From Mytilus trossulus (Eukaryota), in assembly GCF_036588685.1 (NCBI RefSeq), contig NC_086378.1:33232001-33296000 (forward strand): DNA of 64,000 nt, written 5' to 3'. The notes beneath the pieces are model-generated. The model saw nothing but the letters and a program-made list of their open reading frames with translations, made no database searches and was not told the origin of the DNA. A program made the translations under genes and the position numbers. Shown piece after piece: positions 4,579 through 61,926 of the stretch. How positions within the stretch are numbered: position 1 is the stretch's first letter; each line of letters begins with the position of its first letter.

Positions 4579-4867
4579 AGCAGACCTGTCCTCAGGTCTG
4601 GTCAATAGCAGACTTGTCCACAGGTCTGGTCAAAAGCAGACCTGTCCTCAGGTCTGGTCAGGAGCAGACCTGTCCACAGGTCTGGTCTGAGGCAGACCTG
4701 TCCTCAGGACTGGTCAAAAGCAGACTTGTCCACAGGTCTGGTCTGGGGCAGACCTGTCCTTAGGACTGGTCAAAAGCAGACTTGTCCACAGGTCTGGTCT
4801 GGAGCAGACTTGTTGATAGGTCTGCAGCAGTCCTAAAAAAGCAGACCGTAGGTCTGGTCCACCAACG
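4579..4867. repeat. 28-bp minisatellite (9 units) with internal hairpin CAGACCTG-N4-CAGGTCTG
   Basis: Units start at 4579, 4607 ... 4803. Loop alternates tcct/tcca, giving a 56-bp dimer period. Confidence 0.92.
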
Positions 4868-5297
4868 ACGAAGTTAACTTGCTTGACTGCTTAAAAATTC
4901 TCAAGTTAACTTAGAAAGCAGTCAACAAGTTAACTCTAAGTTAACTTTTGTCAAGGTTAGGACCGCACCCATCTGTAGGTTAAACCTTTTTGGAAATGAG
5001 AAAAAAAAATGTTGAAAAAACTGCAAACTTAATATTAAAGACTCACAAGTACCATAATAGGTTCATTCAAAACTGATGTAATTAATAACCATTTAAACTA
5101 AACAAAAGTTTCAAAATCTTTAGACCATGACTTCGCAGGCGGGGCCATACAATTCAACTAGAACAGGGATGCCCCATTGTTAACACAAATATATTCGTAG
5201 GTATCAATGTCATATTGTTATCAGATGTTACCCTCAAACAGACATTATATCAAACTTGTCACCTCGTTGAGGCGAGACGCTAATTTGTAATGCATAC

Positions 5298-5597
5298 CTT
5301 CATTTTGTGTTGATGCTAACGTTGCAATTTGGCCAGATTCTTGTATTTCACATTTCAATGTATCTGCTAGATCTGTGTATCCACTGTTTTGCAGTGCATC
5401 CAAAAACACTGAATAAGTTACGTCTATCCTTTCTAGTATTATTTCAAGCAATACTTTATTCCTATCATCTTGCCCTGCATGTTGTTCAATACGGCGTCTG
5501 TCGTCGACTGAGATCACCAAATGTGTCATCATATGATCTAAAATCTGTTTGGTTTCAATCTCCCGTTTGATTCTGCTTTCATTATTCCTGATTATAT
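5298..5597 (-). CDS. CARD domain exon
   Basis: DIIRNNESRIKREIETKQILDHMMTHLVISVDDRRRIE...RNKVLLEIILER...YSVFLDALQNSGYTDLADTL is CARD-like. 300 nt, phase 1-1. Ends in donor gtatgc, so the gene continues. Confidence 0.85.
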
Positions 5598-8500: not shown

Positions 8501-10879
8501 TTATTTTGGAATGAAACATATAATAAAAAAATATAATATCATTTCCAGGGTATTCACACAAAAACGATACAATGCATTATAAAATAAACCCACATACCAA
8601 CAAACGATTAACGATCGCTGCAAATGAATGTGCGGTTTCAAGTAATTAACTAAACATCAATCTATTAAATAATACAGAGTCAAAACTGCACACTAAACAA
8701 CAAAATACTCATTGAATATAACGGAAGTTTTTAATTTTCATATTTGCTTCAAAATTTTAAGCATCATCTTAAATACAAACTTTGTTTTGAATGGATACAT
8801 GTAGACATCATTCTTGTAATACAGAACAATCCACTGACAGGACATGCACTTATTGCAACATTGAAAAATACTTTATGAAACCCAATTGCAACACTAGTTA
8901 AAACAATAAAATCCTGCAATAGAACATACTTGTATCATTGCTATCAATGAAAACCATTTGCCGTTGTCCTATAAACTTTTGTTTGTGATGTTTTCTTCGT
9001 ACGCTCTCTTAAAAAACGGATACAGATATTGCAATTATTCTGTAAAATATCTGTTAACATTCTTTTAACTATTCACCGACTGTGTACTTGTTGTAAATTA
9101 ACCTGCCTTTACATGATTGCCTTTACATGCAGTGTCAGTGTTTTCAACTCAAAAGTGTTTCGTTGAGAAATTTAGTTTTTCTGATATATGTGTCGAATGC
9201 AAAAGCAAAGACATATTATATTTAGGGAAACTTATTTGTTGAAATTGCAGTAACTCTCCATAAAGGAATCAAACATGTAGAATCCAATTCCTTGTCTGTC
9301 TATGAGATATATACGCCATATGGAACTTGAAATCCACTCTAACGTTTAATTTCCAAACATGACTTATGTTTTCCAATGTTGGTTTGCCAAAGTAATGTAT
9401 AATTTCGATTTGTCTCTTTTCATTACACTTTTGAAAGATTTGACCCCAAAAAAGAACAAAGAATTGCAACATGTAAGAGTCAAAGTATTGTAACATGTGC
9501 AATGACTCCGCCAATAGCATCGACCTAATGGAGAATCCTATCTTGCTGTTCAATTGCTTTCTGCTACTTTTTGAGATATTCAGAGATAAACATTTTCATA
9601 ACATAATTTGATGTGACTATCATAAAAGTGAAGGTGTAGCGCTATAAAACCGGGTTCAACCCACCGTTTTCTACATTTGAAAATGCCTGTACCATGTCAG
9701 GAATATGACAGTTGTTGTCCATTCGTTTGATGTGTTTTATTCTTTAATTTTGCCATTTGATTAGGGACTTTCCGTTTGAAATATTCTAGGAGTTAGTATT
9801 TTTGTGATTTTACTTTTTTCCATCATTGATAAACTATCATTGTTCATGTTATTGTGTAAGTTATCACTTACCTGCGTCTATTTGAACATCTCTTAAAATC
9901 TGTAATAACAAATGCAAAACAGTCATTTAAATATTCAAAACTACGATAAAATAAACAACAATGTATAATGCTACCATATATATTAGTGGAACTTCTTTTT
10001 AAATGAAGCTTTGTTTTGCAAATGAGTCTTGTTTCTAGTCATTGGACTTCAAGAAACATATATTTAGATAACCGTAATTAAAACTGTACATTTATTTCAT
10101 TGTACACTTATGTTGACTTGTACTTCTTATTGGATTCAACTTATGTTTACGTTTTTTTAAAACATAGACAATCAGTCCTATTACTAACAAATCCACTAAA
10201 TGTATGATTACAAATTCGAATGTTATATTGTTAACTATGTACCTGACATAATATGTGGACATTAAGATCTTCTTCTTTCAGACTCTCCTGGAGCTTCTTG
10301 AAATTAGCATGTGTTGTACTCTTCTTCCAATCATGTAGAGCATTAACTTTGATATCAAAATCCCCTCTGCTATAAGACTCAATGTTTTTCCACGACTGGG
10401 ATGGTTTTCTTTCCTTTAAATGCATATACATTTTCCATGTTTCTTCTATTGTCAATTCAGCTGCTAGGCGTCCAAGATGTTTATCTTCGGGTAGGCTGTC
10501 TAACCATGCTTTGTCTAAACCTGTTAAACATTGTTGATATACTTAACCAATGTAGAAGTTTAAATATGCCAACTAAATAAGACGATTGGAAATTATCTTA
10601 ATATGGACTATATCTTAAAAAAAAGAGTAAAGCAATCCTGCTAAATGTAATCTTCCATTGGATTAATATGGAACGCCATGACTGCCTTCTGTCCAATCGA
10701 TGATCATCATTGTATGAAGTGGTCACAGCATTATATGCAGTGGTCACAACATTACAAGCATTGGTTACAATATTATATGCAGTAGGCACAACATTATATG
10801 CAGTCGTGACGGCATAATATGCAGTTGTTACAAAATTATACGTGTTTTGCTGAAGGTGATGATCAGTTTTGATCAGTGT

Positions 10880-10916
<37 letters not shown>

Positions 10917-19900: not shown

Positions 19901-22900
19901 TTGATTGTTTATGCGTTTGAGTTCATCAATAGATACTATTTTCTGCTTTTCGTCGATTTTCTTTGCTAACTGAAGTTCAAGAGGTACAAATTTGGTCGGC
20001 ATTAATTCCCCACAACGAGGATGATCCAAAGCAACTTCTACTAACTGTTTCTTTAAAACATCTATATCTTGGTCGTCCTTGTTTCTTGCGTCAACAAAAA
20101 TAAGTGGTCGGTATTTAAGATGTTTTTTCCCTCCATGGTTTTGAAAGAGTATTTCGATGGAGTTTTCTAATGAATGTCTCTGCTCCTCTATGTTACCCTG
20201 AAATATACATGTTGATCACATATACTTAGAGTTAATAATTTAAACTTTGAGAGTATGATAATAGCATTTTAATTTATGTGAATTTCATGATTTACAAATT
20301 GGTGTTTAGTGGTCTGATATTATCGCTCCAGTTGTTATCACATGCCATTCCATAACGTTATCGCATGTCATTTCGGCGTTACTCGGCAAAATCCAGATGG
20401 TACGTTTTCTTTGAAAAAGATAAAGCATTAGGATTACAACACATTTTAAGCGAAAAAAGAAACAGGAAAATATATTATGTAAAATGCAGAAAAATAAAAA
20501 TAATGATACAATAATTACATTTCAAGATTCCAGCATTGTTTGGAAAGTTAGAGTGTTCATTATGTTTTGTTGATTTTTTTATCGTCAAAATAAATATGTA
20601 TTATATTGTTGTTTTTCTTGTCTGTTGATGGATATAATAGAAATATTTCATACCGGATGCATTAGATAACTTGAGAACCACTATCAAAAGGATCAATATA
20701 TTAAACTGTTATTTCTCCATTTTGAAGTATGTAATAAAAGAGTATGCCATGTCATTTTTCATATTAGGTGTATTATAAACCCTCGATCAATACCCTGAGC
20801 TAATATTGAACCTTGGTCTGATAATAAATATGATATGAAAAATGTCATGTAATAATCGAGTAATAATAAAAGCTGCCAACCATCACATTTGGTAACTTTT
20901 AGATTTTTTAGCAGTTGCTTGTGGCTGCGCAAATCTATTTATCTCTTTTGAAACTATTATTGCAACAATAATTAAGCCTGAACGAAACTCAAACTTTATC
21001 TCTAACACCTCATGGTAGGACTGAAGTGAATTGATTCAGATGCTACAAAACTTTTTGTAAGACGGACTGCAGGATTGCTATGTTTTACTCCCATATCTGT
21101 CATGACAGCCTCCATAAAAAGGTAACTGAACAGATGTTTCCAATTACCAGCCTTTGTAAATATCACTTCACCAGAAGTATGCATGATTGCATAGTATGGT
21201 TGTACATATAACCAACATATTTTAGCGTAATAACCATGATAGATCGATTGAAATCTGTTGCACAGATACTGACGAGTATGTCCTCTCTACCTTGATAAGG
21301 ACCTACATGTGCCAAAAACGGTTAATATCCGGATTAGTTCTTACATTAGCAACATGACAGGTGTCAAATGTAAAGCTGGATCTACATATCAAACCGGAGC
21401 CCTGATATCGATTTCGTTTTTTGGTGGATTTTATGTTGTTCAGAATTTAGTTTTCAATATTTTTTTGTTCATTCTTGTATTTGTCTTTGGTCCTTTGCTT
21501 TGATCATTTTCAATTTATGAATACGAACATGATGAGTGTCACCTTTGTATCTTTCTCTTCCTTTGAGATAATATATCAACCTACTTTAACTTGATCCTTG
21601 TGAGTTGCCACAAATAGAATTTTCGGAAACTCTTCATTCTCCTTCAACGTCTTGCAATATGTAAGTACGGAATTCACCCAATGGACAAGGTATGCTACAA
21701 AACAACTACATATTTAATAAATAAGTCTTATGGCTGTATGCAGATATAACATTTACACACGAACTTAACAAATAAGTTGATTTTTGGAGATTAAAAAACA
21801 CAGATGTGCTACATAGATGATATATAGCTGATATGGTAAAAAGGTAAATCATCACCTCGAGAAGACATTGTCATGCTACATGTATGTGCTCCATAGGTTG
21901 AAATTGTTGTTTAGTGGTAAAAATCTATTCCATAAGTCTCTCAGTTTTATGTTATTCAATTTATATACTGAATGTAATGAGGGTGGTAAAAGGTTATTTT
22001 CGTGCAACGTGATCGCCGTTTTTTATTTCACGTTCAAAGTGTTTTTACTTTTTTATTTGACGTTCAGTCGTGCAAGACAGGTTCCTCAATCAACGTGTTT
22101 TGCTTATTTAATTTTACGTGCATCGTGATTTTCTAATGCTTATTTTGCGTTCTCAGTATTTTTCAAATAAAATTCAAACACTTGGCAGGAATCGTCAAGA
22201 AATACTTTTTTAAAAGCCGTAAACTATTTATATCATAAATGTGTATACTAAATCGGGAATATCAAGTAAAACAGAGAGTTTATATAAACAATTAGACAGT
22301 GACTCAGTCACAAAAGGTTCACATCAAAGTCTTTATTTTTCGTGCAACGTTCATGACAGAAATTATTTCACGTTCAACGTGAAATTATGTCTTATTTCAC
22401 GTTTTTTTTCGTGCAAGCACACCCCTTTACCACTCTCTGTAATGATTCTCTTTTGAATTTCAGATGGAAAATAATAAACCTTGAAGTTGTGAACATAACA
22501 ACTGTCTATAAGCGGAAATTTTAATAAACATATTCCTTTTTTTTTTTTAACATATTCCTAAGATTTGTAGGATTGACAAATGATTCACCGAATATGTGGT
22601 TTAACAATGCAGAGTCATTTTTCCAGAATATAAATTAGTTTTTGATTTTGAAAACAGTAAGTAATATGCATAAGCTAATACAAAATTGTTTACAAATATT
22701 TATATCTTCATTAAAATTAATTGAATCGGAGTAAAAAGTCCACTCATTTAACATACACAACAATCCAAAAAGAGTTAAGTTAATCATAAATGAATATCTC
22801 CTAATTGTCTTCTCTTTTTATGCATGCGCTTCTAAGTTAACTTTAAAAATCTTTAGTAATGATTTATTTTAACAGCACCATCATACGCAAACACGCTTTA

Positions 22901-25900
22901 ACAAGACGCTGATCATCAACTAGCTCGTTTAGTACTAGCTTTATTACCTGTTTAAATTCTCTTTTTAAGATATAAAACAAAGAAATGATTATAAAGTGAG
23001 TACAGGTGCAATTTATGCATGTATTCTTGTTCGATAAGATTAATGTTGAATATACATTTTTATAAGTGCAAAACTGAATGTTGATGTTATCCTGAAGTTC
23101 TTCTCTGATAATCACCTATCCGAAAATTATGTATTTGTAATTTAAGAATAGACGTTACATACCTCCATCCTCTTCATTAATGCTCTCGCCACCATTGAAA
23201 ATAAGAACAAAAGTGCCCCTACTTGATATAAACAATTGATGGGTTAGATGGTAAATTTTCTGTCCTCCAAAATCCCACAGGTCAATTGGCACAATTGTCA
23301 TTTCGTAGTTTCCTTTCATGCATTCCGAACGAACAAGCTTGATAATGTCGTCATCGGATATTTCAATGGTCTTTGGTGAATCATTTCTTGATGTTCCCTT
23401 CATGTTAGTACTGATATCGACTGGTGTTTTGATACTTGTGTTTTTTTTACCTGCAAAGCAACAGGTTACATTGTCTTATCACAAGTCATAATTTAAAAGG
23501 TATATGTAGGCGTAACTTCAACCAAAACATTAACACATCGATACATTTGTCTGATAATGTTACAAGTATGAATTCCTATACATGTGAAATAATCTCGTAT
23601 GCCTTAGTGAAATAATTGATTTAAATAAATAATAAGAATAAGCTATAATAGTTCTATCATAGTCCAATTCAACTATTCATTTTTAAACTTGACATGCTAA
23701 TTTACTCAGAAAGTTTTCCAGGAAAATGTTAAAAGTGAAAGTAAAAGTACATCAGACGTTGAAATGAATAAAAAAAATCTGCAGTTGGGTGCAGACCAGC
23801 AATAATATAAAGTAAACACACGTTAATCCCGCGTGCACATATTTCATTTGTTAACTCCAAATTTTGCATTTACTACAATTGCGTTAACGCGGTCAAGACA
23901 GAGATTTGTAATGTCTACTCGAGTAAATATTCATTGCGGGAGATTTGACTTGAAAAAAAAACAGACGACATAAAATGAAATTTTGTTTTCAGACAAAACA
24001 CTGATTAAAAAATAATTGCTGTAGTTCATGGTTACCTGAATTTAAAAATGATTAAGTTGTTCAACCTTTAAATATAGGAAATATAGTGTCAAGTGTATTT
24101 TATCTATCCATCCCTGCAGACATAAGGAACTGTTTAAACAATATTGTCGAAATATTTTCTTCCACGTCAGTAAACGTACAATGGTCCAAACTTTAATTCT
24201 AATTCTGCACCAATTGTAGCTGGTTTGTACAGCTGATAGACAATCTGCACACATTGGTTGTTTTGTTTAATATATACGTGTATGTTTCAGGTATGTTTGA
24301 GATTTATTTATTTGATAAACAACTAGTATGTGTTACATAATACACAAGTACCTTTAAATATTTTTAACATTCGCTTTCGGAAAGCTTTCAGCTTCGACTC
24401 CTTTTTGACCTCATTTTGAAAACCGACACTTGGGTTTGAAGCACATGCATATGGAGTCCGTAATTCTTCGCTAAGTGGCATAGCGCCTTGATTCTTTATT
24501 TCTTCACTCCTTAAGAAACTCTGTACTGATGCATTTAAAACAGTACCTGAAACATTTTAAGTCGAATTATATCTTTTGCATTAATTTATATCATTATGTG
24601 TAGCTTTAATCATGTATGTGATTATCATAATATGTGTTTAGTGATTTAAGATTTAAGATGTTAATGTACAATCCATGAATTATTATTCTTTCCCATGGTC
24701 TCGTGCTTGATAATATATGATTTCTGCTATTTTTTATTATATTTGAAGTATGGGAACTGTTTTTTTAACTTAAAAAAACACGTTTATCTTAACTAAATTG
24801 ATATAAACTTTGAGTGTTTTTGTCAAGAAGTTTCAATTTTAATAAAGAAAACAAAAAAAGAAATATCATTTACTCTAATTTTAGTATGTAAGAACTCTAA
24901 CTTATTCTTTTATATTTCATATATTTTCTTCCAAATTTTGTATTTGGTAAGTGTCAATAGTGCAACGTACTCTGGTTAAACATGGTGTTCATATACTATT
25001 TTTTTTTATAATTGATATTTGAAAGATGTTCTTTTGTTCAAAAGGATTACTCTTACATGGAAACTAATTTATCTTCATCATTTATTTGTTATCAATAGGA
25101 ACCCTTTTGTACCAGCCTCATGAACAATCAGGGAGTAAATAAAAAAAAAGATATAATTAATAAAAAAAAAAAATTTAAAACAAACTGTATTCATGCCGGA
25201 AACTAACAATTATAGTTCCTACAATTATTTGCAGATTAAAAACCTGTCAATTTCTATTTTGAGTTCTTTTCAAAAAGTATCAAGTTAAGCGTGAATGTTG
25301 TAGTTTTCTTATGCTTATATTCTGTTAATGAGAATGCTGAAATTTTTTTAATTATTTCTTGTTTTGTTTTTTTGCCCCCTTGGATTTACGAACTTCAATG
25401 AAGATACAACCTAAAATTAAAAATCAAATGTTCAGAGAATAGTTGAAAGTTTTTCCAAATCAAAGACATTATAAGAAGAAATAAGTTTCTTCATACTGAT
25501 TCAATAAATGAATGGTTTTCATATACTTTTGAGTTAAAGAACGGAGATAATGTGCTACTTCCGATGGAGTAAATGTCATTTCCAGTCTCATATGATAGCT
25601 TCTATAACAGTGATTCCAAAAATATGAAGATGCTATATACTTTTACTTGATTACAACATATATGGATTCCGATTACTCTTTAATAAAAAATGTGCAAAAT
25701 GTCTACTTCCAGTTTTCTCCAGGTCACTTTCGGTTGGAATTTTTCAAGGTCATATGTCACCCAACATTTTGGTAAAGTTCATAGGCTTATAAATGAACCA
25801 AATTGAAGTAATAATAAATAAATCTGGTAATTACACATTTCAGGGGCACTAACTCCTATAAGGTACCATTAGATTATTTCAGACCAAATTTAACATATCT

Positions 25901-34900: not shown

Positions 34901-37900
34901 TTTGAATTAAACCCATATGTTCTAAGTTTACCGAAGTCGACCATGTTTGTTGGTTGAAGTATCATCGGCCATATTTTATAACAAGCTACAACAATTATGT
35001 TTATAGTCAGGTTTTGTTCAAATACATTTTGCGGAGAAGGTTTCCTGATGGTTAAATAATGTGATCGATGTCTAAAAGCTTCAACTAAAGACAGTTGTTA
35101 CTTGTAAATTGCAAAGCAAGACCATTTATCAGTATAACTATAAAAAAAACGATGCAATTTATTATCATAATTCTTTGACACCAGACTGTATATTATTATA
35201 TTTTCTAGAATTTCACGGAGGATTAACGTGATAGATTATGTTTAAATATATCATAATCAATTATTCTGAACAATATTTTGTAGTCAATAAAAATGAGAAT
35301 AGTCCAGCAGCTAAGCCCAGTATATTAAAATGTTTGATCACGTTATCGTAAAAGCATGATGAAACCTTAAACAGTGTAAGTCTTGATGCCAATACACATT
35401 TATGGATCTTGAGCAACGTACATAAAAATCTATCATGGGATGCCAAATTAAAGATGGCTGACATTAGTCACTGTGCTTGTACAACACATACACTTAATGT
35501 TGTTTAGCAATTACAAGAACTCAGAAAATATTCAGGACTTACGTATCAACTGAAAGACCAGGGTAGCTTTTTTTTAAATATACGCATCTATTATGTAAAC
35601 AAATGCTAAAACAAACGTGTTTTCTTTATTCACAAAAAAATTTAAAATACATACAGTAGTTGAAAATGTAATGTCTTCTGATAGTTACATGTATTGTTAA
35701 AATGTATATATTTGACAGCATTTGACTTTCTTGAATAATTTGTTTTTGTCAGTTAACAAGGAAGATTGGAAATGTTCAGATTTTTCAGATTTTCAAACAT
35801 TCGTTTGACTTGCTTTTATTTTTCCATTGCTGTAGTTTGCGTTTTGAAAAAAAAATATTTACAGAAATTCCATCTTTTGTTCCTTAGAAATAAATAAAAA
35901 CAAAGAATATTTTGACTCAACTCATTTGGTTTTCTCGCATGCAACAATGCATATGACGTCTTATGAACATCAGTAAATGTTAATTTGCTAGTACAAATTT
36001 TATGGCAATGGGAAAAAGTACTCCTACCCTTCTCATCAAACAGGAAAACATTACCCTTGCCAATGCAAATTTTAGCGTAAATGTATATGTTTGACAGAGA
36101 ATGACTTGAAATTCTCAAACTAAGTATCAAAATTGTTCATATTCCACTCATTCTTATAAACTACTTTTATTCGAAGTATCCCAGATTGTTTAAATCCATT
36201 TCTGTAATGGCAGATTAAAAAAAAAACGGAAAGGATGGAAGTAACGGTTTATCACAATATACAACCCGTTCAGTGATTTCGTACATATTTTGACATGCAA
36301 ATTCGTCATTTGCATTTTATGTCTTATTTTAAAAGTAAAGTTATAGCGCGTTTGCTTATACTTATTGATTTAAACTTCGACAACTATTGTTTATTTTGAC
36401 TATTTCCTTTATATCAAATGTGATACCTGTTGAAAATTGTATAAGATATAAAAGAAAATCTTATTTGATTGCCAATGAGACAACTATTCACAAGAAACCA
36501 AACAACACAGAAATTAAACATTGTAGGTCACTATACGGCCTTCAGCAATGAGGAAAGCCCATACCAAATGGTCAGCTTTAAATTGCCTCTCAAAATGACA
36601 AATTTGAAACAATTTAAGCGAGAAAACTAATAACAAAACTACTTTACAAAAATTGAACGAAAAACAAATATGTAGCATAGCAACAAACGACAACCACTGA
36701 ATTACACGCTCCTGACTTGGTATAGGCACAAACCTACATAATGTGGCGGGTTTAACATGCAAGCGGGATCCCAACCTTCCACCTTACCTGAGTCGTCTCA
36801 TTGTTAGATATAAAATCCTCACAATTGATTCGTAGAAATGTTAACTAGAGATAGCAAATTTGTATTTGGGAATACAATTTATGTGTAGGAATTTAATGAT
36901 ACTGTATCATGAGGTAGTATTTTTATAACGGTAAAAACATGAAAAAGTATACTGTAAACAAACCACTTTACTATCAAATAAGCATAGGTTCAAACCATCT
37001 AATAAGGAATGAAAGCATCTAAACACATGACATCAAAAAAGAAGTATTCACTGGTGTCACTATTCGACTAAATATTTCTGATTTCTATAATTTCACATTA
37101 GTCAAATCTAATTTGTAGTGTAGGATATCACCTATCAACGATGAGAAACAATGATACTACGTTTAAAGGTTTTGACAATTTCGGATAATTCAGTAAATAG
37201 GGAATATTTATGATGTAGTAGGTTAACAGTAGTCCAGGTATACAATACTTTGTTTTCAGATACTAATATTAAATGGTCAACTCAACATGATGCTTAAGTA
37301 TGAGAGCTTTTAAAAATATAAATTGAAATGTTAAACTTTGTATTCATTAAACTTCCGAAAAACAAAAAATATTCAATCTAATAATCTAGCAGAAAAGAAA
37401 ACCTCCTTTCATTACAGCAGTCATGACAGCCGTTTGAAATATCGAATTTGAAAATGCATGCATTCAATTAGACTTTCAAGAGTAGAAGAATTAGTAATTT
37501 ACATTTTGTTTTCAAATTGCTTAATTTTTACCTTTCTCTAAGAAGATCCAAACTCTCTTCTTTATATTCATGCCCGCCCTTCCAAGATATATCCATATAC
37601 CATCCGTAGATTCACGTTCAATTGGAGCTTCGTCCCCCACCAAAATCTTAGTTAGTGTTGTCTTGCCAACTGCGAACTTGCCCGTCAAAAATACCCTGTT
37701 CCAGTAGCATTTATACGATCCAGTCTTTAGAAGATTATCAAATTGCTTATCAGAAAGCTTCGTCAATTCATCTTCGAGGCCTGTAATCAAAATTATTATT
37801 AATAGAATATAATGAATCTTTTATGGTAAAATTCACTTGTTTTGGTCTAAATGATGTGAAAATAATGCAGATACAAATTTCAGCATGCGAACCAGAATAT

Positions 37901-40900: not shown

Positions 40901-43900
40901 AGTTAAACCTAGATATCTTACAAATCATAAGTTTTATTGATAACTGCATAAAATCTCTGATATGAAAAACAGTAAACTATCCCTGTTGTTTGGTCACGAG
41001 TTGCAAATATTGATATTTGTATTCTTAGATTCATTTTTATCAATACAGTGTCATATAATGAAAGTATATAACACATTGTAAGAAACAATGTCTTTCTTTC
41101 CGCGTCAATAGTTCGTTTTTAGCAACGACGTTGATAACCTTTTGAAAAAACCTATCATTGTATGATTTCTTTCATTTGGATATAACTTTTAAAGTTTTTT
41201 AACAAGAAATAGTGTTTCATTTCTAACCATGCTTACATTTATGAAAACAATTATCTAATTTGTAAAGTCATTTCTACATGTGCATGTACGCTAATCAATA
41301 TACATTTTGTATTTCAACACAAAGGATCGAACACTTTACTATCACTCAGTGACAAATAGTTAGCAACTGGTCTTATTTAAGGAGGCTCACGGGTATAAGA
41401 TTTTCAGAAAAAAATTAAACATTATTTTTCATTACAAGTTTTATTGATTACCTTTCGTAGTTGTTACTTTATCATATGGTGCAAAAATCATTCCAAAAAA
41501 TCAATTCGTGTTGGCCCTAGATGACTTTTAAAATGTACATATCATTGAAAAAGTTCTAAATTTTCTCCCTTTGATGCAAAAATGCCATTTTTTTGAGAAA
41601 ATATACGCATTTCTAATGTTCCAGAAGCAGATGGAGAAGACTTGACTAATATTTTAATTGAAATTGCTGGTTCGATAGGGGTAGTCATAAAGCCAGACAA
41701 CATTAACGCCATACATAAAATTGGTCCGAAGCGCGAGGGGAAGGCACGCCAAGTCATTGCTAGATTCGTCCACCGTAAGCCCCGATTTCTGTTGTTGAAG
41801 AATCGTGCCGAGCTGAGAAAAAATGAACGTTTTAAGAACATTTTTATAGCTGAAGACCTTACAAAGCTGAAATTAAAGCTACTCTTTTACATTAAAAAGC
41901 AGACCAATGTAAAATCAGCATTTACAAAAGAGGGAAGGATTCACTGTACGCTAAATAACGATTCAAAGGTTACAATTGATAGTCCGGATGACTTGTTTAA
42001 AATTGGAATGGATACCGTGGATTATAAAGCTTTAGGATTGCCCGAATTTTAGGGGTGCGAAGGAAGTCAAAAGGAGCACAGTGTTGAAATAAATTCAAAA
42101 TCTGAAAATCTGCCCATATTCATAAGTGAAAGTGATCGTCAAAATTGTGAAATTCAAAATGTGAAAGGCCAGCTAAAAGTTCTGTCGTTAAATGTGTGTG
42201 GGTTGGTTTCAAAAAGTAAAATCCCCGATTTTGTGGAGTTAATTTCATCATATGATATATTGTGTTTTACTGAATCAAAATTTGATGCATATGATGATGT
42301 TCATTTATCTGGTTATGAATTACTACCACCTATAATACGTGATAAATGTAGAGATAAGTCTGGTGGTATAGCAGTATTTGTAAAAAGTTCTATTTACAAA
42401 TATGTGAAAGTTATAGTCAATGTATATATTTGTTCTCTATTGTGAATTTGTTGCCAAGTGATTTGTTGTTTGGGATAGTATATATCCCCCCCTGAAAATA
42501 GTGTTTATGGTTCAGTTGATATATTTGATGAGATTTTAGAAAAAATAATTGATATCACTGTTGATAAAAATACCAAGTGTGCCTACTATGGGACTTTAAT
42601 GCCCATACAGGGACTCATGATGACTTTATTATTGTAAATGATACAATCCTAGACAGCCTGCTGATCGACGAGAATTCCAGAAAATATATGAACAGTATTA
42701 ATGCTCTGTATGAATTGGGTATCCCAATTAAGCGTTCTTCGAAGGACATTTCGAATATAAATAATTATGGACACAAATTATTGGAATTTTGTAAAAATTT
42801 AGATCTATATATTGTTAATGGTAGAATTAGTAATGATCAATTAGTAGGGGCTGTTACAACAAGTAAAACACACGTATTGATTATGCTATTGTTTCACCTA
42901 TGTTATTTAAATTGTTTTTCATACTTCAATATTGAAAATGTTGATCCAATTTTGAGTGATATTCATTGTCCAGTTGTCATACATTTTGATACTTCTGTAA
43001 TACTTGAACATGTTGAATCTGTTGATACTCTGTCACATGATGATAAAAGCAATGTTGTATACAAATCAAAATGGAAGAATAATAATGCAAATGTATTTTT
43101 AGAAAATTTGAATGATGAAAATATTCATGATTTAGTTGAAAAACTTGAAAATCTAGATGTCAATAATATTAATGTTGAAACTGTCAACAATTTAATATTG
43201 AATTGTAATTCAATTATTAAAAATGCTGCTGATAAAGCTGACATGATTGTAGAATTCAAACCCAAGAACAGTCGACTTGGTGTCAGGTCAAAAAAATGTT
43301 AACCTTATTTTAATCAAGATTGTTATTTAAAACGTAAAGCATATCGTAAATGTAAAAATCTCCACTGGAGATTACAAAGGGCTGAAACAAAAGAAAATAT
43401 AATTGCTAGTAGTAGAGAGTATAAACGTACGCTTAACAAGCAGTTTAGAGAATATCAGAAGTCTGTTATAGACAAATTGAAAAATTTGCGTAAATCTGAT
43501 TCAAAAGCATACTGGTCTCTTTTGAACAAATGTGATACAAAAGGTAACAAAGCTGTAAACAAAACTGCTATGGATGTATTATATGATCATTGCAAAAATC
43601 TTAATGCTCTTGATGAGCAGGATGATAACGATATTATATTACCTAATAATATTACTGATTATAATATTGAATTAAATCGAGATATTACTGAAGACGAAGT
43701 ATTGCATGCTGTCAAATCATTGAAAAATAATAAAGCATGTGGTGGTGATCTTATATTGAATGAAATTTTGAAATATGGTACAGTAAAGTTGATGCCTGTT
43801 TTTGTAAGAATATTTAATATTGTATTTCATAGTGGTATTATACCTGATAGTTGGTCAGAAGGTTATATATGTCCTATATTTAAGAATAAAGGTAATCCAA

Positions 43901-46900
43901 ATGATGTGGATAATTATCGTGGTATTACTATTTTAAGTTGTTATGGTAAATTATGTACTTGCATTTTGAATAATAGGCTTCATACATATTTAGAAAATTC
44001 TGGTTTATTGTGTGAAGAACAAGCAGGGTTCAGAAAAGGTTATAGTACGACAGATCATATTTTTAATTTGAAATGCTTGATTGATTCATACTTACATAGA
44101 GGTAGGAAATTGTATTGTGTATTTGTTGACTATCGAAAAGCTTTTGACTCTGTCAGAAGAGTATATTTGTGGCAAAAACTGTTAAAATGTACCATTGATG
44201 GCAAAATGTTTAAGATTATCAACAATATGTATAACAATGCAAAGTCTTGTGTGAGACAAGGCAACTCTTGTTCAAACTTTTTTAAATCCAATGTTGGTGT
44301 ACGCCAAAAAGAAAATCTATCACCTGTATTATTTGCCATTTTCTTAAATGACTAGGTTGAATTTATGTCACATTCATATAATGGTTTAGTTGATATGAGT
44401 ATTGCAGCACGTCTTCTTGATACTGATGAAGTCGCTGTATATTTTCGTTTATATTTGTTATTGTATGCAGATGATACTGTAATTTTAGCCGAATCGGCAG
44501 CAGAGTTACAAGCCTCATTAAATGCCATGTATTTATATTGTCAAACTTGGAAAATGCAAGTTAACATATCTAATACAAAAGTTGTAATATTTTCAAGATC
44601 TAGACTTAACACAGATAATATGAACTTTAAATATAGTGGTGAAAGCCTCAATATTGTTACAAATTTTCAAAACATTGGTATTATATTTTCATGTAAGGGT
44701 AATTTTAATGACGCCAAAGCACATCTTGTACAGCAAGCAAGAAAAGCCATAATTATAGTCTTAAGAAAGGCTAGGAAGTTGAATTTACCAATTGATATGC
44801 AATTATAGCTATTTGATACAATGGTTGTACCTATTTTGTTATATGGTGCAGAAGTATGGGGTTTTGAAAATTGTAATATTATAGAAAACTTGCATATGCA
44901 ATTTTGTAAAATAATTTTGAAAGTTAAAAAAAGTACTGCTCATTGTATGATTTATGGAGAATTGGGTAGAATACCATTACATATTCTTATTAAAGCTGGA
45001 ATGGTTGGTTTCTGGCAACGTATCATGTGTGGTAAAAGAGAAAAAAAATCATATACACTGTATTCTTTATTGTATCAGCTTATTAAAAGGGGTATCTACC
45101 ACTCTAAATGGTTGTTAGAAATTAAAAATACTTTTTATGAATGTGGATTTAATTTGATGTGGGATGATCAAATAATTGCTAAATCTGATAATATTAGTAA
45201 GAATGTCAAGAAATGTTTAAGTGATAAATTTATGTTGAACTGGAGTAATAATGTTATGAATTCTGCAAAATGTCTTAACTACAGAATATACAAGTCTGAT
45301 TTTTGTTTTGAGAAATATTTATCGGTGTTACCATCTGATCTAAGAATGTATTTATGTAAATTCCGTTGCCTTAGCAATAAATTGCCCATTGAAACGGGCA
45401 GATTTTTTAATATTGACAGATCTGAAAGACAGTGTAATCTTTGTAATGCTAATGAACTTGGTGATGAGTTACTTATTCAAATGTACCTTTATCTGTATTA
45501 ATTATATACTATTATTGCACATTTGTTAACCATGTTGTTCTAATGTAAATATGTTCACACTTTTATTGTTTGTTAAAACAATGTTGTACTTGCATACCCC
45601 ATGTGCGGGCTTTAGTGAAATAAAATGTCTTATGTCTTACATTGTCTTATGTCTTATGGCATTAAAATTAAAATATCTTTTTTAACTCATCGGTGACCTA
45701 TATTTTTTATTGTTGTTTTCGAATAAGCTGTACAAAAACTAAATAATTGTAAAATTTAAGCGATTTCTGTAATTAAGTTCTTTTTATATTTCGATATTAC
45801 CGCTTTTTCTCCTATTATTTCAACAGAAAAAAAGGACATTAACAAAATTGTATGCTTCTTTCGACGCCAGATTGTGAGCGTAAATGAACGGTGACCCATT
45901 TTTTAATTTCATTTTTCTATTAAGTATAAGATAAAGTTCATTTATAGAAAGATATAGCGAAATCCTATATTAAATAAAAAAGTGATTTAGACCCGCTAGC
46001 CCCCTTAAACGTATAATCTGCAATTTAACTCATATAATAGAAAACTAGCCCGTGAATGATCTAAGTTAAAAGTGAATAATCAGCAATAACATTTATGCTG
46101 ATGGTGATGACTGATGACGTTTAATGTCCAGCGGCAAATGTATTGCATACACCTATATGATGTGTAGGCATATTTACATGATAGATAAGTTGACGTATAT
46201 TGAAAGTCTTATTAATTGACAAGAATGATAAAAATAAAGACATGAGGTATATTCCCCACGAGACAACTATTAAAATACGAACAGATGTAGATATAAACCA
46301 TTACAAGTCATAGTAGAACCTTAACAAAAACAAACAAAAACATACTATTTAGACATGTGTGATCTTGAAACTCAACAAAATGTAAAATAATTCAAAAGAA
46401 AAATAAAAGGGGCCAAAGAGCTTTAATCGTTCACCGGGATATATTTTGTAGATCTACCATACATAATGTTTTGCTGTTCAAAGTTTATTGTGTCTATTGT
46501 TGTTTTCGATAAAAGATAAAAGGTGTAGATCACGGGGCTTTTATCAAGCTATACTTGCTATAGGATGTGCAGAAATTTCAGACAGTACATACATTAAACA
46601 TGGGGAAAAAATATGTTGTTTGATAGTGAGAAAACTAAACGCAAGAATTTTAAGATAAAATATGAAAAAAATAGCTCTGTAAATAAGAAGAATAAATACA
46701 TACATGGGACTCGTTTTCTTACTGTAAATCAAAATAGGTAAATCTACAATAAATTCTGTTACAAAAGTTACAATATCTGAGTTATTTTTATCTTACATTA
46801 TTAATTAAAAGAAATTTCAATTGAAATTGAAACATTCTGTTTTTGTTGAAATAGTCCAAAATAATAAGATGACATATATTGTCGAGTTTACTGAGCGGGG

Positions 46901-58900: not shown

Positions 58901-61900
58901 TTACTCCCCCCCCCCCCAATTTCTTTTATCTACTGTATTAATATTTGAAGACATGTCCATCTAAACAAAGTCTTATTGATCTGCAGCTAAACCCCCATAA
59001 ATATGATCCACATTAAATTCGATCCCCAAATAGTCACTTTATAGGAATAAATATTCAAAAAGTCGTAATATATTCCATCGATTTTACATATACATTGTAC
59101 ACAAAATATAATAAAATATTTTATGTCCCAGTTTAGATTAAAAATAAAAAGGAATGAGAAACCTTTCTTTTTTCTACGATGTCTGTACAAAGTTGTTAGT
59201 TTATCAACTTGATCCTAACTTCAAGGCAGATGGCGGATTCGGGGGTTGGGGCGAATAGGTCGTCCACCCTTGGATTGGACAACGTATCGTGTTTAAGTAT
59301 AACATTTAAAAAAAAAATTTAGTCTCGCTACATTCGTTGAAATTTTTGTAATTTTATAGAAAACTCCCCTTTCAAAATTCAGTAAACGCCCTAAAGGTAA
59401 AAAATATATTTAGCTGTGCAGTATATCTGAGGTAGTTAATGCACACCTAAGCTGTGCATTATTCGGATTATAGCACCTATGTATGTCATGTGTTAAGTTG
59501 TCATTGTGATATATTATTCCAAACAAATCATCAAAGTCTCATTTTAAAATATATTGTATTTGAAATACTCTGAATCTTGCAGTATCATATTTTAAAACTT
59601 ACTAAAATATTGCTGTTTTAATTGAAATCTTCGCCTGTCATTTGTTACTCAGTCTTGAAAAAATGGGTGGAATTTAGCAAACGTGCGATTTTGCCTATTA
59701 TATGTTAACTTATATCACATATGTGAACAAGAACTAAGAGAAAAAGTAATAGAATGCCTCTAAAGAGATTTACACACTCGTGGCGTTTTTTCTACATTTA
59801 TCTACAGATATAAATCAGTAAATTCCACGTTTGTGCTCTTTAGTCATTTAGCCAAAAATATCAATAGCAATGTTTTTCACACACGAATATGCAATATTAA
59901 CAAGAATGAAAAAAATAATCCAACCATTACGGGACAGCTTTTGGTATGAAAAAGCCCAAACGAAATGAATAACTGTTTTAAAAGTGGTGTTAAATCGAAA
60001 ATGAATATCATCAATAGTAAATGAAAACTTGCTATATTTTCCATGAATGCAAAAGTGTGCATTGCATTTTAGAATATCCCAAAATCGATCGTTTTCCAAT
60101 TTGAAATTGCTGAGGGCAAGCTGAATGCATACCAAGTGACATGGTCAGTTTTGCACACATCACAAAACAGATCATTTCTATGTTCAGTGGACTGTGAAAT
60201 TGGAATCAAAATTCTAATTTGGCATTAAAATTAGAAATATCATAGCATAGGGAATATGTAAACTAAGTTTTCAAGTTCATTGGACTTTAACTTCATCAAA
60301 ACCTACCTCGACCAAAACCTTTAACCTGAAGCAGGACAGAAGGACGAACGGACGGATGGACGGACGGATGGATGGACAGATGGACGAACGAACGGAAGTA
60401 CAGACCGAAAACATAATGCCCATAGTTACTCTTCTAGGTCAATACTTAAATTTAATCACATGTTTAAACTTATAGTCATTGAATTCATTCCCGTATCTTT
60501 GCTCGTCAGCCCCCCTCCACCCTATTTTTTTTTTCATTTTTTCAATGGGCATAAATTCCATAAAAAATGTCAAGATTTTGTTGACATAAACCTTATCAAT
60601 CATTTTAATCAAAGTTCTTCATGAATTGCAAGGGTCGGAGACTTGAAATACTATTTTCCTATAATTTATGTCGTATTGAAAACGGAATAAACCCTATAAA
60701 AATAAAAATAACAGATCTGTTGTTGCTTTTGTTGTTTATTTATGCTTTTCAAACTTGGCGATTCAGAGTTAAACCTAACGGTATAGACATTTGTATACTG
60801 CGTGAAACCGTATTTAGACCTTTATGTCATTGATCTAATTTGAAAAAAAAAATATGTTTTTTTGTCTTCCTTTACGTCGGTATTTTAGTATTTAGAGCTT
60901 TCCCTTTACTGATGTGCATTGTATGTACTTCTATGTACATTTTCCTGGACCGTTGATAGCTATTAAAAAAGTAGTGGGTTCAAATGGCAAACAAATAGTA
61001 AATGAATGTGCATGTCCTAAGTCAAAACGGTGTAAGTAATTGTCTTGCCATATCAGGTTATTCCACGACAAAACAGAGTCTCTGGTGCACATCATAGAAA
61101 TTCATGACGACACATTTTTGGTATATTCATTTTTTTAATAATGGTAACGTATATCTGCAGATCTAACATTAAGACGAGGTATATACAAATTGCGATGATA
61201 GCTCGGTATAAACACAGGTTATCCGATGGAGAACGTCTGTCGTAAAGTTGTCACACAAATAGACCTATATATATATATCTGTGTGATTTTCTATGTGATG
61301 CCATGTGCACTTGGGCATATGCTTTTATACTGTCCTGTTGTGTCGACTGCTCTCAGGTCAAATAACAAGATGTATTGACCATCTGTACAAAGTACGATGA
61401 CATATCAGTAATGGTCATTCATCTCATCATAATATCTAACCAAATTACTGGTGTCTATCCCCATGCATATACCATGTGCGTCTATAACCCACATTTCAAT
61501 TTACAACGTTCCCTTGTGCCTTTTGCTATAAGATTACAAATCTTCTCGATTATATATTAAAAATGAATAACTTTTTATGTGTAGGCTGTGATTGGGATAG
61601 AGATTTTAAACTGCAGTTAAACTTTCATATACTCAGGCAAAGTTGACCCCGACGGATTAGACTTTTTATGCATGTTTTTATATCCTAGAGTTTGTTGTCT
61701 CAACTTTAATGTCAAATAATGTACTTTTATTCCTGTGAGCCCAGTTAATAGAAATCATCTTGTTCTTTTTCTTCTCCTTCCTTACCTTTTTGTGATACAG
61801 TTGTTATACGGGTAAATAAAAGATAACATGTACCTTGAGGTAGTCCATTACTTCTTTCTTATATTTTTTTTTGTATTCCGAGTCATCCCTGTCTTCTTTT

Positions 61901-61926
61901 GCTGCCAGATGGTATGGGGTCTCACC
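5298..61926 (-). CDS. Multi-exon Roco-family gene (ANK...Roc-COR-Death-like-Death-CARD), partial at both ends. Exons in transcript order: 61834-61926, 50086-50158, 37532-37780, 24352-24546, 23163-23450, 21585-21694, 18992-20197, 15408-15447, 10243-10520, 9872-9899, 7554-7856, 5298-5597
   Basis: All 12 exons have AG/GT borders. Phases chain 0-0, 0-1, 1-1, 1-1, 1-1, 1-0, 0-0, 0-1, 1-0, 0-1, 1-1, 1-1 with no stop. Roc G1-G5 motifs occur in order, followed by COR and death-fold domains. Additional phase-preserving exons could have been missed. Confidence 0.88.
7554..7856 (-). CDS. Death domain exon
   Basis: IGRETFQFGIELGLSVVEMHQIQSNH...QTEDVLKKWR...AYEVLAKTL is a classic Death pattern. 303 nt, phase 1-1. 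Confidence 0.88.
9872..9899 (-). CDS. 28-nt micro-exon (ILRDVQIDA-G)
   Basis: attacag|...CAG|gtaagt (consensus donor). Phase 0-1 restores the frame between the two death exons. Confidence 0.78.
10243..10520 (-). CDS. Death-like domain exon (LDKAWLDSLPEDKHLGRLAAEL...ALHDWKK...FKKLQESLKEEDL)
   Basis: 278 nt, taacag|...CAG|gtacat. Phase 1-0. Helical death-fold pattern with LxxW in the expected position. Confidence 0.78.
10675..11035 (-). repeat. Non-autonomous repeat with a 21-bp tandem array and (GAT)n; inverted copy of 12625-13145
   Basis: The reverse complement matches 12640-13140 (aactatggctggatttgacaat..., caaaacacgtataat, actgcatataatg units). Confidence 0.8.
12060..12290 (+). mobile_element. 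Truncated Helentron/HINE-like (pearl-type) element, 3' part
   Basis: cctatgttctattt...(GACG)n...gtgatgagaaaagctcact; homologous to 33660-33934 and, in reverse, 63251-63500. Confidence 0.65.
12625..13145 (+). repeat. Same family, with a longer 21-bp array (actgcatataatgctgtgacc-type units)
   Basis: The 21-bp period gives TTAYNA(L/V) heptad pseudo-ORFs on both strands. Confidence 0.85.
15408..15447 (-). CDS. 40-nt micro-exon (LPAKDDRCSDNCV-G)
   Basis: tttcacag|...G|gtaaga. Phase 0-1 is exactly what is needed to join the COR exon to the next exon. Confidence 0.78.
18992..20197 (-). CDS. Large exon: end of Roc (G5-like FVDAR) plus COR domain
   Basis: 1206 nt, phase 0-0; extends ORF 18968..20029 upstream. 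FLKVNHALGKLIFF...VIIDPVFLIDVLR and YFLIPCMI are COR-like motifs. Confidence 0.92.
20748..20849. repeat. Short palindromic element
   Basis: catgtcatttttcatat ... atatgaaaaatgtcatg (16/17 inverted match), with weaker inner symmetry. Confidence 0.6.
21585..21694 (-). CDS. Roc exon with G4 motif (AYLVHWVNSVLTYC...PKILFVATHKDQVK)
   Basis: 110 nt, ttgtag|...AAA|gtaggt. Phase 1-0. THKD is the Roc G4 motif. Not in the ORF track. Confidence 0.9.
21979..22437. mobile_element. 459-bp MITE with GAG...CTC termini and 6-bp TSD TGTAAT
   Basis: TIR gagggtggtaaaagg / ccctttaccactctc. tgtaat on both flanks (21973-78, 22438-43). Internal cgtgcaacgt/ttcacgttc motifs repeated. Confidence 0.8.
23163..23450 (-). 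CDS. Roc exon with G3 motif
   Basis: IDLWDFGGQKIYHLTHQLFISSRGTFVLIFNG matches the Roc WDFxGQxxYxxTHxxF motif. 288 nt, ttgcag|...G|gtatgt. Phase 1-1. Confidence 0.95.
24352..24546 (-). CDS. Exon encoding an insertion within Roc (GTVLNASVQSFLRSEE...KAFRKRMLKIFK)
   Basis: 195 nt open frame, tttcag|...AAG|gtac. Phase 1-1. Not in the ORF track. Confidence 0.75.
26455..26931 (+). mobile_element. 477-bp non-autonomous element with asymmetric sub-terminal inverted repeat and 3' hairpin, flanked by TTA/TTA
   Basis: atggggacaaagtc at the left end matches gacttcgtccccat at 26895-26908, followed by the small hairpin cagg-N6-cctg. This layout resembles Helentron-associated elements. Confidence 0.6.
28821..30040. 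mobile_element. 1.22-kb TIR element nested in the second Harbinger-like copy
   Basis: Perfect 15-bp TIR caaattgacgaaagg / cctttcgtcaatttg. Host sequence resumes after 30040. TSD ambiguous. Confidence 0.78.
30240..30452 (+). repeat. SINE-like dispersed repeat (gaagatgtggtatgagtgccaatgagacaact family)
   Basis: Related copies at about 11775, 36445-36790, 39080, 39725-39995(-), 40270-40580(-) and 50780-50865(-). Confidence 0.7.
32836..33934 (+). mobile_element. Helentron/HINE-like (pearl/CvA-type) element, apparently complete
   Basis: 5' aacaagag, internal ~500-bp duplication, (GACG/GACA)n microsatellite at 33825-33880, 3' hairpin agctcac...gtgagct followed by aaa. Confidence 0.75.
37532..37780 (-). 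CDS. Roc GTPase exon: P-loop and switch I
   Basis: RVFLTGKFAVGKTTL (G1, GxxxxGKT) and ERESTDGI (G2). 249 nt, ttacag|...G|gtaaa. Phase 1-1. Confidence 0.92.
41597..42052 (+). pseudogene. LINE ORF1 C-terminal part (L1/Tnp22-type RRM and C-terminal domain)
   Basis: ENIRISNVPEADGEDL...HKIG...RQVIARF...IFIAEDLT. Confidence 0.8.
42053..45501 (+). pseudogene. LINE ORF2 (endonuclease + reverse transcriptase), disrupted
   Basis: Frameshift(s) near 42420-42590. In-frame stops at 43300, 44353 and 44806. Confidence 0.92.
46880..47380 (+). pseudogene. Penelope-like element RT/thumb relic
   Basis: From 46949: RYIDGVRSINNPNFADWVPSIYPQPLEIKGTTDTASSAS...TRIYDKRDDFNF*IINFPHLSSN...YISQLIRY*RAC. Not in the ORF track. 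Confidence 0.85.
47580..47905 (+). repeat. Dispersed repeat (aaatgcctgtaccaagtcaggaatatgacag family)
   Basis: Other copies at about 9625-9820(+) and 17340-17495(-). Confidence 0.7.
49149..49842. mobile_element. 694-bp MITE with 5-bp flanking duplication TACAG
   Basis: TIR cagtcaggggcgttacttaaac / gtttaagtaatgcccctgactg. tacag at 49144-48 and 49843-47. Confidence 0.82.
50086..50158 (-). CDS. Linker exon (TFMSKEEQEATLVSQQKDASPVVR-G)
   Basis: 73 nt, gttttag|...AG|gtag. Phase 0-1 bridges the ANK exon (phase 0) and the Roc exon (phase 1). Overlaps ORF 49940..50152. Confidence 0.7.
52306..56465. mobile_element. Academ-like DNA transposon derivative with ~1.7-kb inverted arms; TAG...CTA termini, 3-bp TSD TAT
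   Basis: tat|tagtccggcggct ... agccgccggacta|tat. Decayed transposase motifs (HLEADTKIMVH, HAFTCCD/TGCDTV, GKRK.W, C-terminal Cys cluster) are present in both arms. Confidence 0.85.
56685..57240 (+). repeat. Dispersed repeat (ataaaattgagaat...agacaacaacccgacc family); inverted partial copy at 27085-27310
   Basis: The two copies match directly in reverse complement. Confidence 0.7.
58297..58448. repeat. 152-bp GC-enriched palindrome
   Basis: tcggtatatgtgatttaatctgcacagctcgggtgaccc ... gggtcacccgagccgtgcagattaaatcatatatgccga; outer gttattg/caataac. Confidence 0.9.
60170..60425 (+). mobile_element. 3' fragment of a HINE-like element with (GGAC/GGAT)n microsatellite
   Basis: gacggacggatggacgg... 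followed by gaaaacataatgccc. Confidence 0.55.
61834..61926 (-). CDS. Exon encoding an ankyrin repeat (GETPYHLAAKEDRDDSEYKKKYKKEVMDYLK)
   Basis: 93 nt, ttgcag|...AAG|gtac. GxTPxHxAA ankyrin signature. Phase 0-0. Not in the ORF track. Confidence 0.8.

Follow-up and report, generated by a model that had tools for sequence, protein, structure and literature searches.

The stretch of Mytilus trossulus DNA analyzed here (the window: 64,000 nucleotides, C6:33232001-33296000 of the 1.30-Gb assembly, C6 being contig NC_086378.1) carries on its minus strand 12 exons, probably out of at least 16, of LOC134721151, an intact gene. We favor, as the better supported of several readings, the view that its product is a ROCO protein without a kinase, arranged as ANK-Roc-COR-DD-DD-CARD-CARD (ANK, ankyrin repeats; DD, death domain), that would act as a GTP-gated death-fold scaffold. 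In the following the evidence for the gene model, for the switch unit and for the tail is presented, followed by the family to which the gene belongs and by the alternatives to the proposed function.

Analysis of splice sites and reading phases along the minus strand reveals 12 exons bounded by AG acceptors and GT donors, free of internal stops and consistent in phase (Table 1). A first-pass annotation, made from the letters of the window alone, had proposed this chain, including five exons whose donors (61834, 24352, 21585, 15408, and 9872) were not given in frame by the open reading frame (ORF) track; all 12 exons are present with splice sites and frames as proposed, and these five donors as well as the end coordinates 5298 and 61926 proved exact. 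It had also anticipated that further domains might follow the donor closing the CARD 1 exon. Indeed, when both flanks were extended, another CARD exon, closed by a stop codon, was located 5.9 kb outside the window, beyond its start, while the exons found upstream encode ankyrin repeats and no kinase. The window itself has a G+C content of 30–38% and no runs of N, and its ORFs of bacterial style are all short, which marks it as eukaryotic DNA.

The downstream part of this model is corroborated by the databases. A search with the COR exon (phmmer, 1.84 billion representatives) yielded, at 100% identity, XP_063440026.1, an entry of 949 aa named "uncharacterized protein LOC134721151 [Mytilus trossulus]". 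The translations of exons 6–12 are exact consecutive substrings of this protein, starting at residues 82, 118, 520, 534, 626, 636, and 737, with agreement of the split codons, and that of exon 13 likewise agrees exactly with the protein from residue 837 on. An annotation of the gene thus exists, but it is uncharacterized. For the upstream part, comparison was made with the 90% cluster-mate of this entry, the M. galloprovincialis orthologue XP_076111057.1 (1248 aa), to which exons 1–5 align with 76–100% identity: exon 1 corresponds to residues 79–111, within the Pfam Ank_2 stretch of the orthologue, exon 2 is 100% identical to residues 114–136, and exon 4 shows 97% identity (searching with P0183, the M. 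californianus orthologue, did not retrieve exon 4). The order of Pfam domains is Roc (partial)-COR-Death-CARD-CARD in XP_063440026.1 and ANK-Roc-COR-CARD-CARD in XP_076111057.1, with Roc at E 6e-10 in the latter. Moreover, COR, DD1, DD2, and CARD1 exons recur in one order, on one strand and within about 15 kb at no fewer than 12 loci of the genome, which supports a single transcription unit.

The ankyrin repeats placed ahead of Roc-COR by the first-pass annotation are, at this locus, a putative part of the transcript. Exon 1 alone has no Pfam match, the ankyrin portion inside the window being a terminal half-repeat only; to this half-repeat are added Pfam-positive single-repeat ankyrin exons situated on the same strand 15–39 kb upstream (Table 1), of a kind that is spliced into the orthologue models of M. 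galloprovincialis and M. californianus. If all upstream ankyrin exons belong to it, the gene spans 85–110 kb.

Pfam was run exon by exon, the full-length architecture being read from database proteins. Roc is recognized in exon 5 (E 2e-6), with a weak Roc/P-loop match in exon 3, and COR-A in exon 7 (E 7e-12), in adjacent exons; with Roc directly followed by COR, the protein belongs to the ROCO proteins. The nucleotide-binding motifs read from the sequence (G1 GKFAVGKT, switch-I STDG, G3 DFGGQ, and G4 THKD) are all intact, and G3 and G4 are near-invariant in 52 family members. A full-length model of XP_063440026.1, computed with a 52-sequence family alignment, has a mean predicted local distance difference test score (pLDDT) of 68.9. 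COR-B and the truncated Roc domain are of low confidence in this model, and the Roc-COR region returns LRRK1, LRRK2, and the Roco proteins of C. tepidum and M. barkeri in Foldseek searches. Motifs, Pfam signatures and the Foldseek matches to LRRK1/2 and C. tepidum Roco agree on the intact Roc-COR unit that had been announced from the sequence.

The four domains of the tail are predicted in the same model as helical bundles with pLDDT values of 82–92, and the linkers between COR and DD1 (residues 503–526, including micro-exon 8) and between CARD 1 and CARD 2 (residues 821–841) fall below 50. Foldseek relates the tail to the tandem CARDs of MDA5 and RIG-I, to the Apaf-1 CARD and to the RAIDD death domain. 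Three of the domains are identified directly by Pfam: DD2 as Death (PF00531, E 1.5e-8, 35.1 bits for a cut-off of 22.6), and CARD 1 and CARD 2 as PF00619 (E 6e-12, 45.8 bits, and E 1.2e-10, 41.6 bits, respectively, for a cut-off of 23.9). The solved sequence nearest to DD2 is the CRADD death domain (E 2e-5); the one nearest to CARD 1 is the Apaf-1 CARD (E 4e-7), with a structural TMt of 0.86–0.90 at 25% identity. Exon 9, the first of the two domains originally termed death-like, has no Pfam match on its own. A profile was therefore built from an alignment of 22 of the 39 related exons of the same genome; over its full length it matches the CRADD/RAIDD death domain (E 5e-6), followed by those of Fas, FADD, and RIPK1, and 5 of the 22 paralogous exons match PF00531 directly. 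The AlphaFold model of DD1 (pLDDT 90.7) adopts a helical-bundle fold whose best Foldseek match is the RAIDD death domain 2o71 (template modelling score, TM, 0.85; root-mean-square deviation 1.4 Å), ahead of the death domains of TRADD, Fas-FADD, p84, RIPK1, and TNFR1. On profile and model, exon 9 encodes a genuine, if divergent, death domain. The two death-like domains and the CARD of the first-pass annotation are all confirmed, DD1 through its paralogue profile and model and the other two through Pfam, and the last exons keep their death-fold assignment when confronted with profiles and with structure prediction. Searched against the ESM Atlas, the tail pointed only weakly towards a CRADD-like cluster (score 0.77).

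Neither DD1 and DD2 nor CARD 1 and CARD 2 share significant similarity in BLASTP comparisons. This excludes a recent internal duplication of the tail and indicates that the tandem pairs are old. DD2 and CARD 1 are phase 1-1 cassettes; the DD1 exon runs from phase 1 to phase 0, phase 1 being regained through the 28-bp exon 10. Retention of the intron that follows CARD 1 would add 17 codons before a stop (Table 1), defining a candidate single-CARD isoform.

Table 1. Exons of LOC134721151 and associated features. Positions are those of the window unless a contig or locus prefix is given; phases are entry>exit.
Feature	Position	Strand	Phase	Description
Upstream exon	L017:4675-4779	-		Single-repeat ankyrin exon, Pfam Ank E 1.5e-7
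Upstream exons	~L050:8907-8996, 9195-9302	-		Single-repeat ankyrin exons
Exon 1	61926-61834	-	0>0	C-terminal ankyrin half-repeat/cap, GETPYHLAA
Exon 2	50158-50086	-	0>1	73-bp linker; acceptor ttttag, donor AGAG/gtag
Exon 3	37780-37532	-	1>1	Start of Roc: P-loop GKFAVGKT 37659-37682, switch-I STDG 37599-37610
Exon 4	24546-24352	-	1>1	Variable Roc insertion; no Pfam match
Exon 5	23450-23163	-	1>1	End of insertion and Roc G3 DFGGQ 23260-23274
Exon 6	21694-21585	-	1>0	Roc G4 THKD 21594-21605
Exon 7	20197-18992	-	0>0	402 codons: end of Roc, COR-A, COR-B
Exon 8	15447-15408	-	0>1	40-bp micro-exon, disordered linker from COR to death domain
Exon 9	10520-10243	-	1>0	Death domain 1 (DD1), divergent
Exon 10	9899-9872	-	0>1	28-bp micro-exon, restores phase 1
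Exon 11	7856-7554	-	1>1	Cassette: death domain 2 (DD2)
Exon 12	5597-5298	-	1>1	Cassette: CARD 1; donor at its end
Exon 13	C6:33225778-33226118 (= L016:3778-4118)			CARD 2, ends in TAG; outside the window
Roc insertion	23275-24546, 37532-37598	-		Between switch I and G3
Stop after CARD 1	5245-5247	-		Reached by intron retention
Satellite array	1-3628			267-bp unit, 13.6 copies, 89% matches
Short tandem array	4573-4824			28/56/84-bp periods, GTCAAAAGCAGACCTGTCCACAGGTCTG-like units
Retrotransposon	41642-45501	+		Degraded non-LTR element in intron 2
Retrotransposon ORF	43477-44355	+		Pfam RVT_1 1.5e-17
Retrotransposon ORF	44365-44808	+		Pfam RVT_1 3.7e-6

The gene is one member of a very large lineage-specific expansion in Mytilus and other bivalves. 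A search with the tail of XP_063440026.1 recovered about 75 clusters at 90% identity, all of them from M. trossulus, M. edulis, M. galloprovincialis, M. californianus or M. coruscus and all named "uncharacterized" or "... domain-containing"; Roc, COR, Death and CARD are present in most, often with Ank. The count of paralogues suggested earlier was carried out on the M. trossulus genome and gave, as lower bounds, at least 37 intact COR exons, 39 DD1-like and 138 DD2-like exons, and at least 150 each of CARD1-like and P-loop exons, the architecture being found in the five Mytilus species. A flag "1 TAG" on many paralogous COR exons raised the possibility that these are pseudogenes; it was rejected, the TAG being the intron acceptor at the edge of the alignment and not a nonsense codon.

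More distant relatives of the COR exon occur in oysters, scallops and freshwater mussels. Among 43 long bivalve Roc-COR proteins, 42 contain COR-A and 19 Death, followed by HEPN_DZIP3 (9), Ank (6), SH2 (5), TIR (2), and CARD (2), so that, from these sequences, the bivalve Roc-COR expansion samples many output domains beyond the death fold. EH, EF-hand, NHL, OTU, and RhoGAP modules are also seen in this set. One M. galloprovincialis protein of 1632 aa (VDI03767.1, P0021) has an nSTAND3 NTPase at its N-terminus in addition to Roc-COR and a death domain, and hence two NTPase switches; the fusion could be real, or two gene models could have been merged.

We further compared the gene with its two nearest paralogues, exon by exon, using synonymous divergence (dS). 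These are referred to as C11 (COR exon C11:63784220) and C6b, on the same contig as the window (COR exon C6:33546924). In the P-loop exon the window gene and C11 do not differ at any of 52 synonymous sites (dS 0.00), each lying at 0.235 from C6b. In the COR exon the window gene is at 0.21 from both, the paralogues being separated from each other by 0.056. In the tail, the distances of the window gene to C11 and C6b rise to 0.93 and 0.74 for DD1 and to 0.97 and 0.86 for DD2, those between the two paralogues being 0.135 and 0.071, respectively; for CARD1 the distance to C6b is 0.91, and no C11 exon was found. Over the 10 kb that follow its DD2, C11 is devoid of a CARD exon, in agreement with the existence of a Roc-COR-Death protein (P0211) encoded on a contig equal in length to C11. 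The best relatives of CARD1, with 57–63% identity, belong to other clusters, situated on contigs C5, C9, and C19. This gradient, together with the differing composition of the tails, indicates that in the window gene a young head, whose P-loop and COR exons are close to one paralogue lineage, has been united with a much older tail by recombination or gene conversion among family members. The P-loop exon (window 37533-37778) is 99% identical to its C11 counterpart (C11:63756773-63757018, L052); its lack of synonymous differences, against a dS of 0.21 in COR, suggests a very recent interchromosomal gene conversion or an assembly duplication. The ratio of nonsynonymous to synonymous divergence (dN/dS) comes to about 0.25 for the COR exon as well as for the DD1 exon (0.26–0.29 for COR relative to the paralogues); COR and death-domain exons are under purifying selection.

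Several known systems help to interpret this architecture. In DAPK1, which is tied to apoptosis, ankyrin repeats likewise precede Roc-COR and a death domain closes the C-terminus, but DAPK1 carries an N-terminal Ca2+/calmodulin-regulated kinase, a single death domain and no CARD, whereas the mussel protein, one of a family of at least 100 genes, lacks a kinase and has death domains and CARDs in pairs. LRRK1, LRRK2, and Chlorobium tepidum Roco provide the best matches to Roc-COR in sequence and structure, with the same G motifs and the same logic of repeats followed by Roc-COR; the output of the LRRKs is a kinase with WD40 repeats, the input of C. tepidum Roco is a leucine-rich repeat (LRR) domain, and none of these proteins contains death-fold domains. 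On the side of the tail, RAIDD/CRADD is nearest to both mussel death domains and Apaf-1 to CARD 1. RAIDD is, however, a small CARD-DD adaptor devoid of an NTPase, and Apaf-1 relies on an NB-ARC (STAND) ATPase and WD40 repeats, whereas in the mussel protein Roc-COR takes the position of the switch and is followed by two tandem death-fold pairs. The presence of death domains and CARDs in one protein suggests, by analogy, that DD and CARD assemblies might be linked through it with CARD caspases. The analogy to NLRs and Apaf-1 drawn in the first-pass annotation survives at the level of layout; it does not extend to the STAND core, since no NACHT, NB-ARC or nSTAND was matched by Pfam in XP_063440026.1 or XP_076111057.1.

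In the mechanism that we propose on these analogies, Roc-COR would function as a nucleotide-dependent conformational or dimerization switch, the role that it has in LRRK, in DAPK and in the Roco proteins of bacteria, and the ankyrin array would be the input, binding a ligand or a partner. The output would consist of the four flexibly linked death-fold domains, which in the "on" state would nucleate homotypic death-domain and CARD assemblies. Such assemblies might recruit adaptors with death domains or CARDs, or the CARD-bearing caspase-2-like caspases expanded in bivalves, in a logic akin to that of the PIDDosome, the apoptosome or a NOD platform, and the exon-sized phase-1 cassettes of the tail would permit swaps between family members. 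Given the resemblance to the RAIDD death domain and the Apaf-1 CARD, CARD caspases are candidate partners, and a role of the family in cell-death or immune signaling is probable.

A number of observations weigh against this proposal, or against the singularity with which it was first put forward. The distance from the switch-I threonine to the G3 aspartate is 148 residues. In Ras, about 21 residues separate T35 of switch I from D57 of G3. By this difference, exon 4 together with the opening half of exon 5 forms an insertion of about 120 aa in Roc (Table 1), which is poorly conserved in the family and fast-diverging; a gap of this size is unusual, and normal switching might be modified or even prevented by it. 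The locus had been described as a hidden gene and is in fact already in RefSeq as LOC134721151, albeit N-terminally truncated, and in place of one singular scaffold a family of at least 100 genes was found. Roc-COR as an NLR-like switch joined to CARDs or death domains has already been noted (PMC4104024, PMC9334734, PMC8195603). No functional data on the family, be it a partner, GTPase activity, expression or immune induction, were found in the literature searched. Finally, XP_063440026.1 begins at a methionine within exon 5 and lacks exons 1–4, including the P-loop. The mature M. trossulus transcript may accordingly omit these exons, and a product without the P-loop could not bind GTP normally.

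This last point leads to the first alternative, in which the recombinant locus is poorly or not expressed, or its real product is the P-loop-less RefSeq protein, making it a decaying or regulatory by-product of a family with fast turnover. The start of the RefSeq model at the exon 5 methionine, with omission of the P-loop exon, the chimeric join of head and tail (dS of 0.00 for the P-loop but 0.93–0.97 for the death domains relative to the same paralogue) and the large introns invaded by satellite and long interspersed nuclear element (LINE) sequences would all be accommodated by this explanation. On the other hand, none of the 13 exons is interrupted, their splice sites are canonical and their phases agree, the dN/dS of about 0.25 holds for COR and death-domain exons alike, and orthologues at 86–96% identity are kept in three Mytilus species (M. 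galloprovincialis, M. californianus, and M. coruscus), with the P-loop present in the models of the first two. Exons 1–4 being intact and phase-compatible, it is probably the RefSeq annotation that is truncated at its N-terminus, and we regard a by-product as unlikely.

The protein could also be a negative regulator or decoy that would tie up adaptors or caspases through its death domains and CARDs in the manner of CARD-only and DD-only inhibitors, the GTPase controlling release and not assembly. The tail has no enzymatic effector, its composition differs between close paralogues, and tandem death-fold proteins can be inhibitory, such as vFLIP, which is among the Foldseek matches of DD1. Nothing specific favors inhibition, however, and the nearest solved relatives, the Apaf-1 CARD and the RAIDD death domain, belong to activating platforms or adaptors; this explanation seems to us quite improbable. 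We attach just as little weight to the idea that the gene is a housekeeping ROCO of the DAPK/LRRK type to which a lineage-specific tail has been added, with a function in the cytoskeleton, trafficking or autophagy instead of defense or cell death. It is true that ANK-Roc-COR-DD is the DAPK1 core minus its kinase and that the best structural matches of Roc-COR are LRRK1 and LRRK2. Yet no kinase domain was found in full-length orthologues or upstream exons (no Pkinase match in the 1248 residues of XP_076111057.1, and ankyrin repeats in those exons that similarity revealed over about 50 kb upstream), and at least 150 paralogous Roc exons with variable and shuffled tail modules are traits of a lineage-specific expansion and not of a conserved housekeeping gene present in single copy. 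A canonical DAPK orthologue, raised in the first-pass annotation as the outcome that would contradict it, is ruled out by the absence of a kinase from these proteins and exons, by the two death domains and two CARDs and by the very large family with its 150 or more paralogous P-loop exons.

Concerning novelty, ROCO proteins with CARD or death domains have been reported from Trichoplax adhaerens (Civiero et al. 2014, PMC4104024), and ROCO-TIR and ROCO-MyD88-like proteins from Aplysia (PMC9334734). Compared by architecture, these too are Roc-COR proteins of animals in which a kinase is absent and death-fold or TIR domains are fused on, known in silico only; the ANK...DD-DD-CARD-CARD order, the insertion in Roc and the expansion in mussels do not appear in these two papers. 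Beyond animals, the bacterial AP-GTPase (Roc-COR) conflict systems share the layout of sensor, Roc-COR and effector (PMC8195603), and the LRR-ROCO proteins of brown algae are candidate immune receptors diversified by exon shuffling (PMC11378527). Both resemble the mussel protein in joining a variable repeat sensor, a Roc-COR switch and a variable effector or adaptor, the homology shown being that of the Roc-COR core, and both differ from it in belonging to other kingdoms and in using LRR sensors, whereas the mussel sensor is ankyrin and the shuffled part is apparently the effector tail. No description of a mussel ANK-Roc-COR-DD-DD-CARD-CARD family was found in the literature searched, in which "ROCO" occurs in Mytilus papers only as author names or incidental table entries. 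As one mosaic member of a very large family, the gene is interesting, but not unique.

The introns contain repetitive elements (Table 1). The satellite array fills much of the intron between CARD 1 and CARD 2, and the short tandem array lies just downstream of the CARD 1 exon. The retrotransposon in intron 2 lies on the strand opposite to the gene; its frame is broken into at least four pieces, of which two ORFs match the reverse transcriptase family RVT_1 and the flanking ones have no Pfam match.

Returning to the GTP-gated scaffold, a broader proposal can be formulated for the organism. For bivalves, an expansion of CARD-containing caspase-2-like caspases and no clear caspase-9 have been reported, as has an oyster Apaf-1 that lacks a CARD (PMC7836458). 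Mussels might use a large, recombining Roc-COR family as cytosolic death-fold platforms, in which members of the DD-DD-CARD-CARD type would activate caspase-2-like CARD caspases in a GTP-gated manner and so replace the apparently missing CARD-bearing Apaf-1 and caspase-9, cassette swapping providing combinatorial tails; we hold this wider proposal to be doubtful as it stands.

If functional, the gene would represent a natural Roc-COR switch wired directly to DD and CARD oligomerization modules, and a tractable system for how conformational change in Roc-COR reaches an output. ROCO proteins have been studied mainly through LRRK2 and DAPK1. At the level of annotation, the RefSeq model of LOC134721151 can be extended by the P-loop exons. 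For the biology of bivalves, the family may help to explain how CARD caspases are triggered where the canonical Apaf-1/caspase-9 axis is lacking. Moreover, the measured head-tail chimerism provides concrete evidence of the exchange of effector tails between paralogues, and such exchange bears on the diversification of innate-immune and cell-death genes in marine invertebrates.

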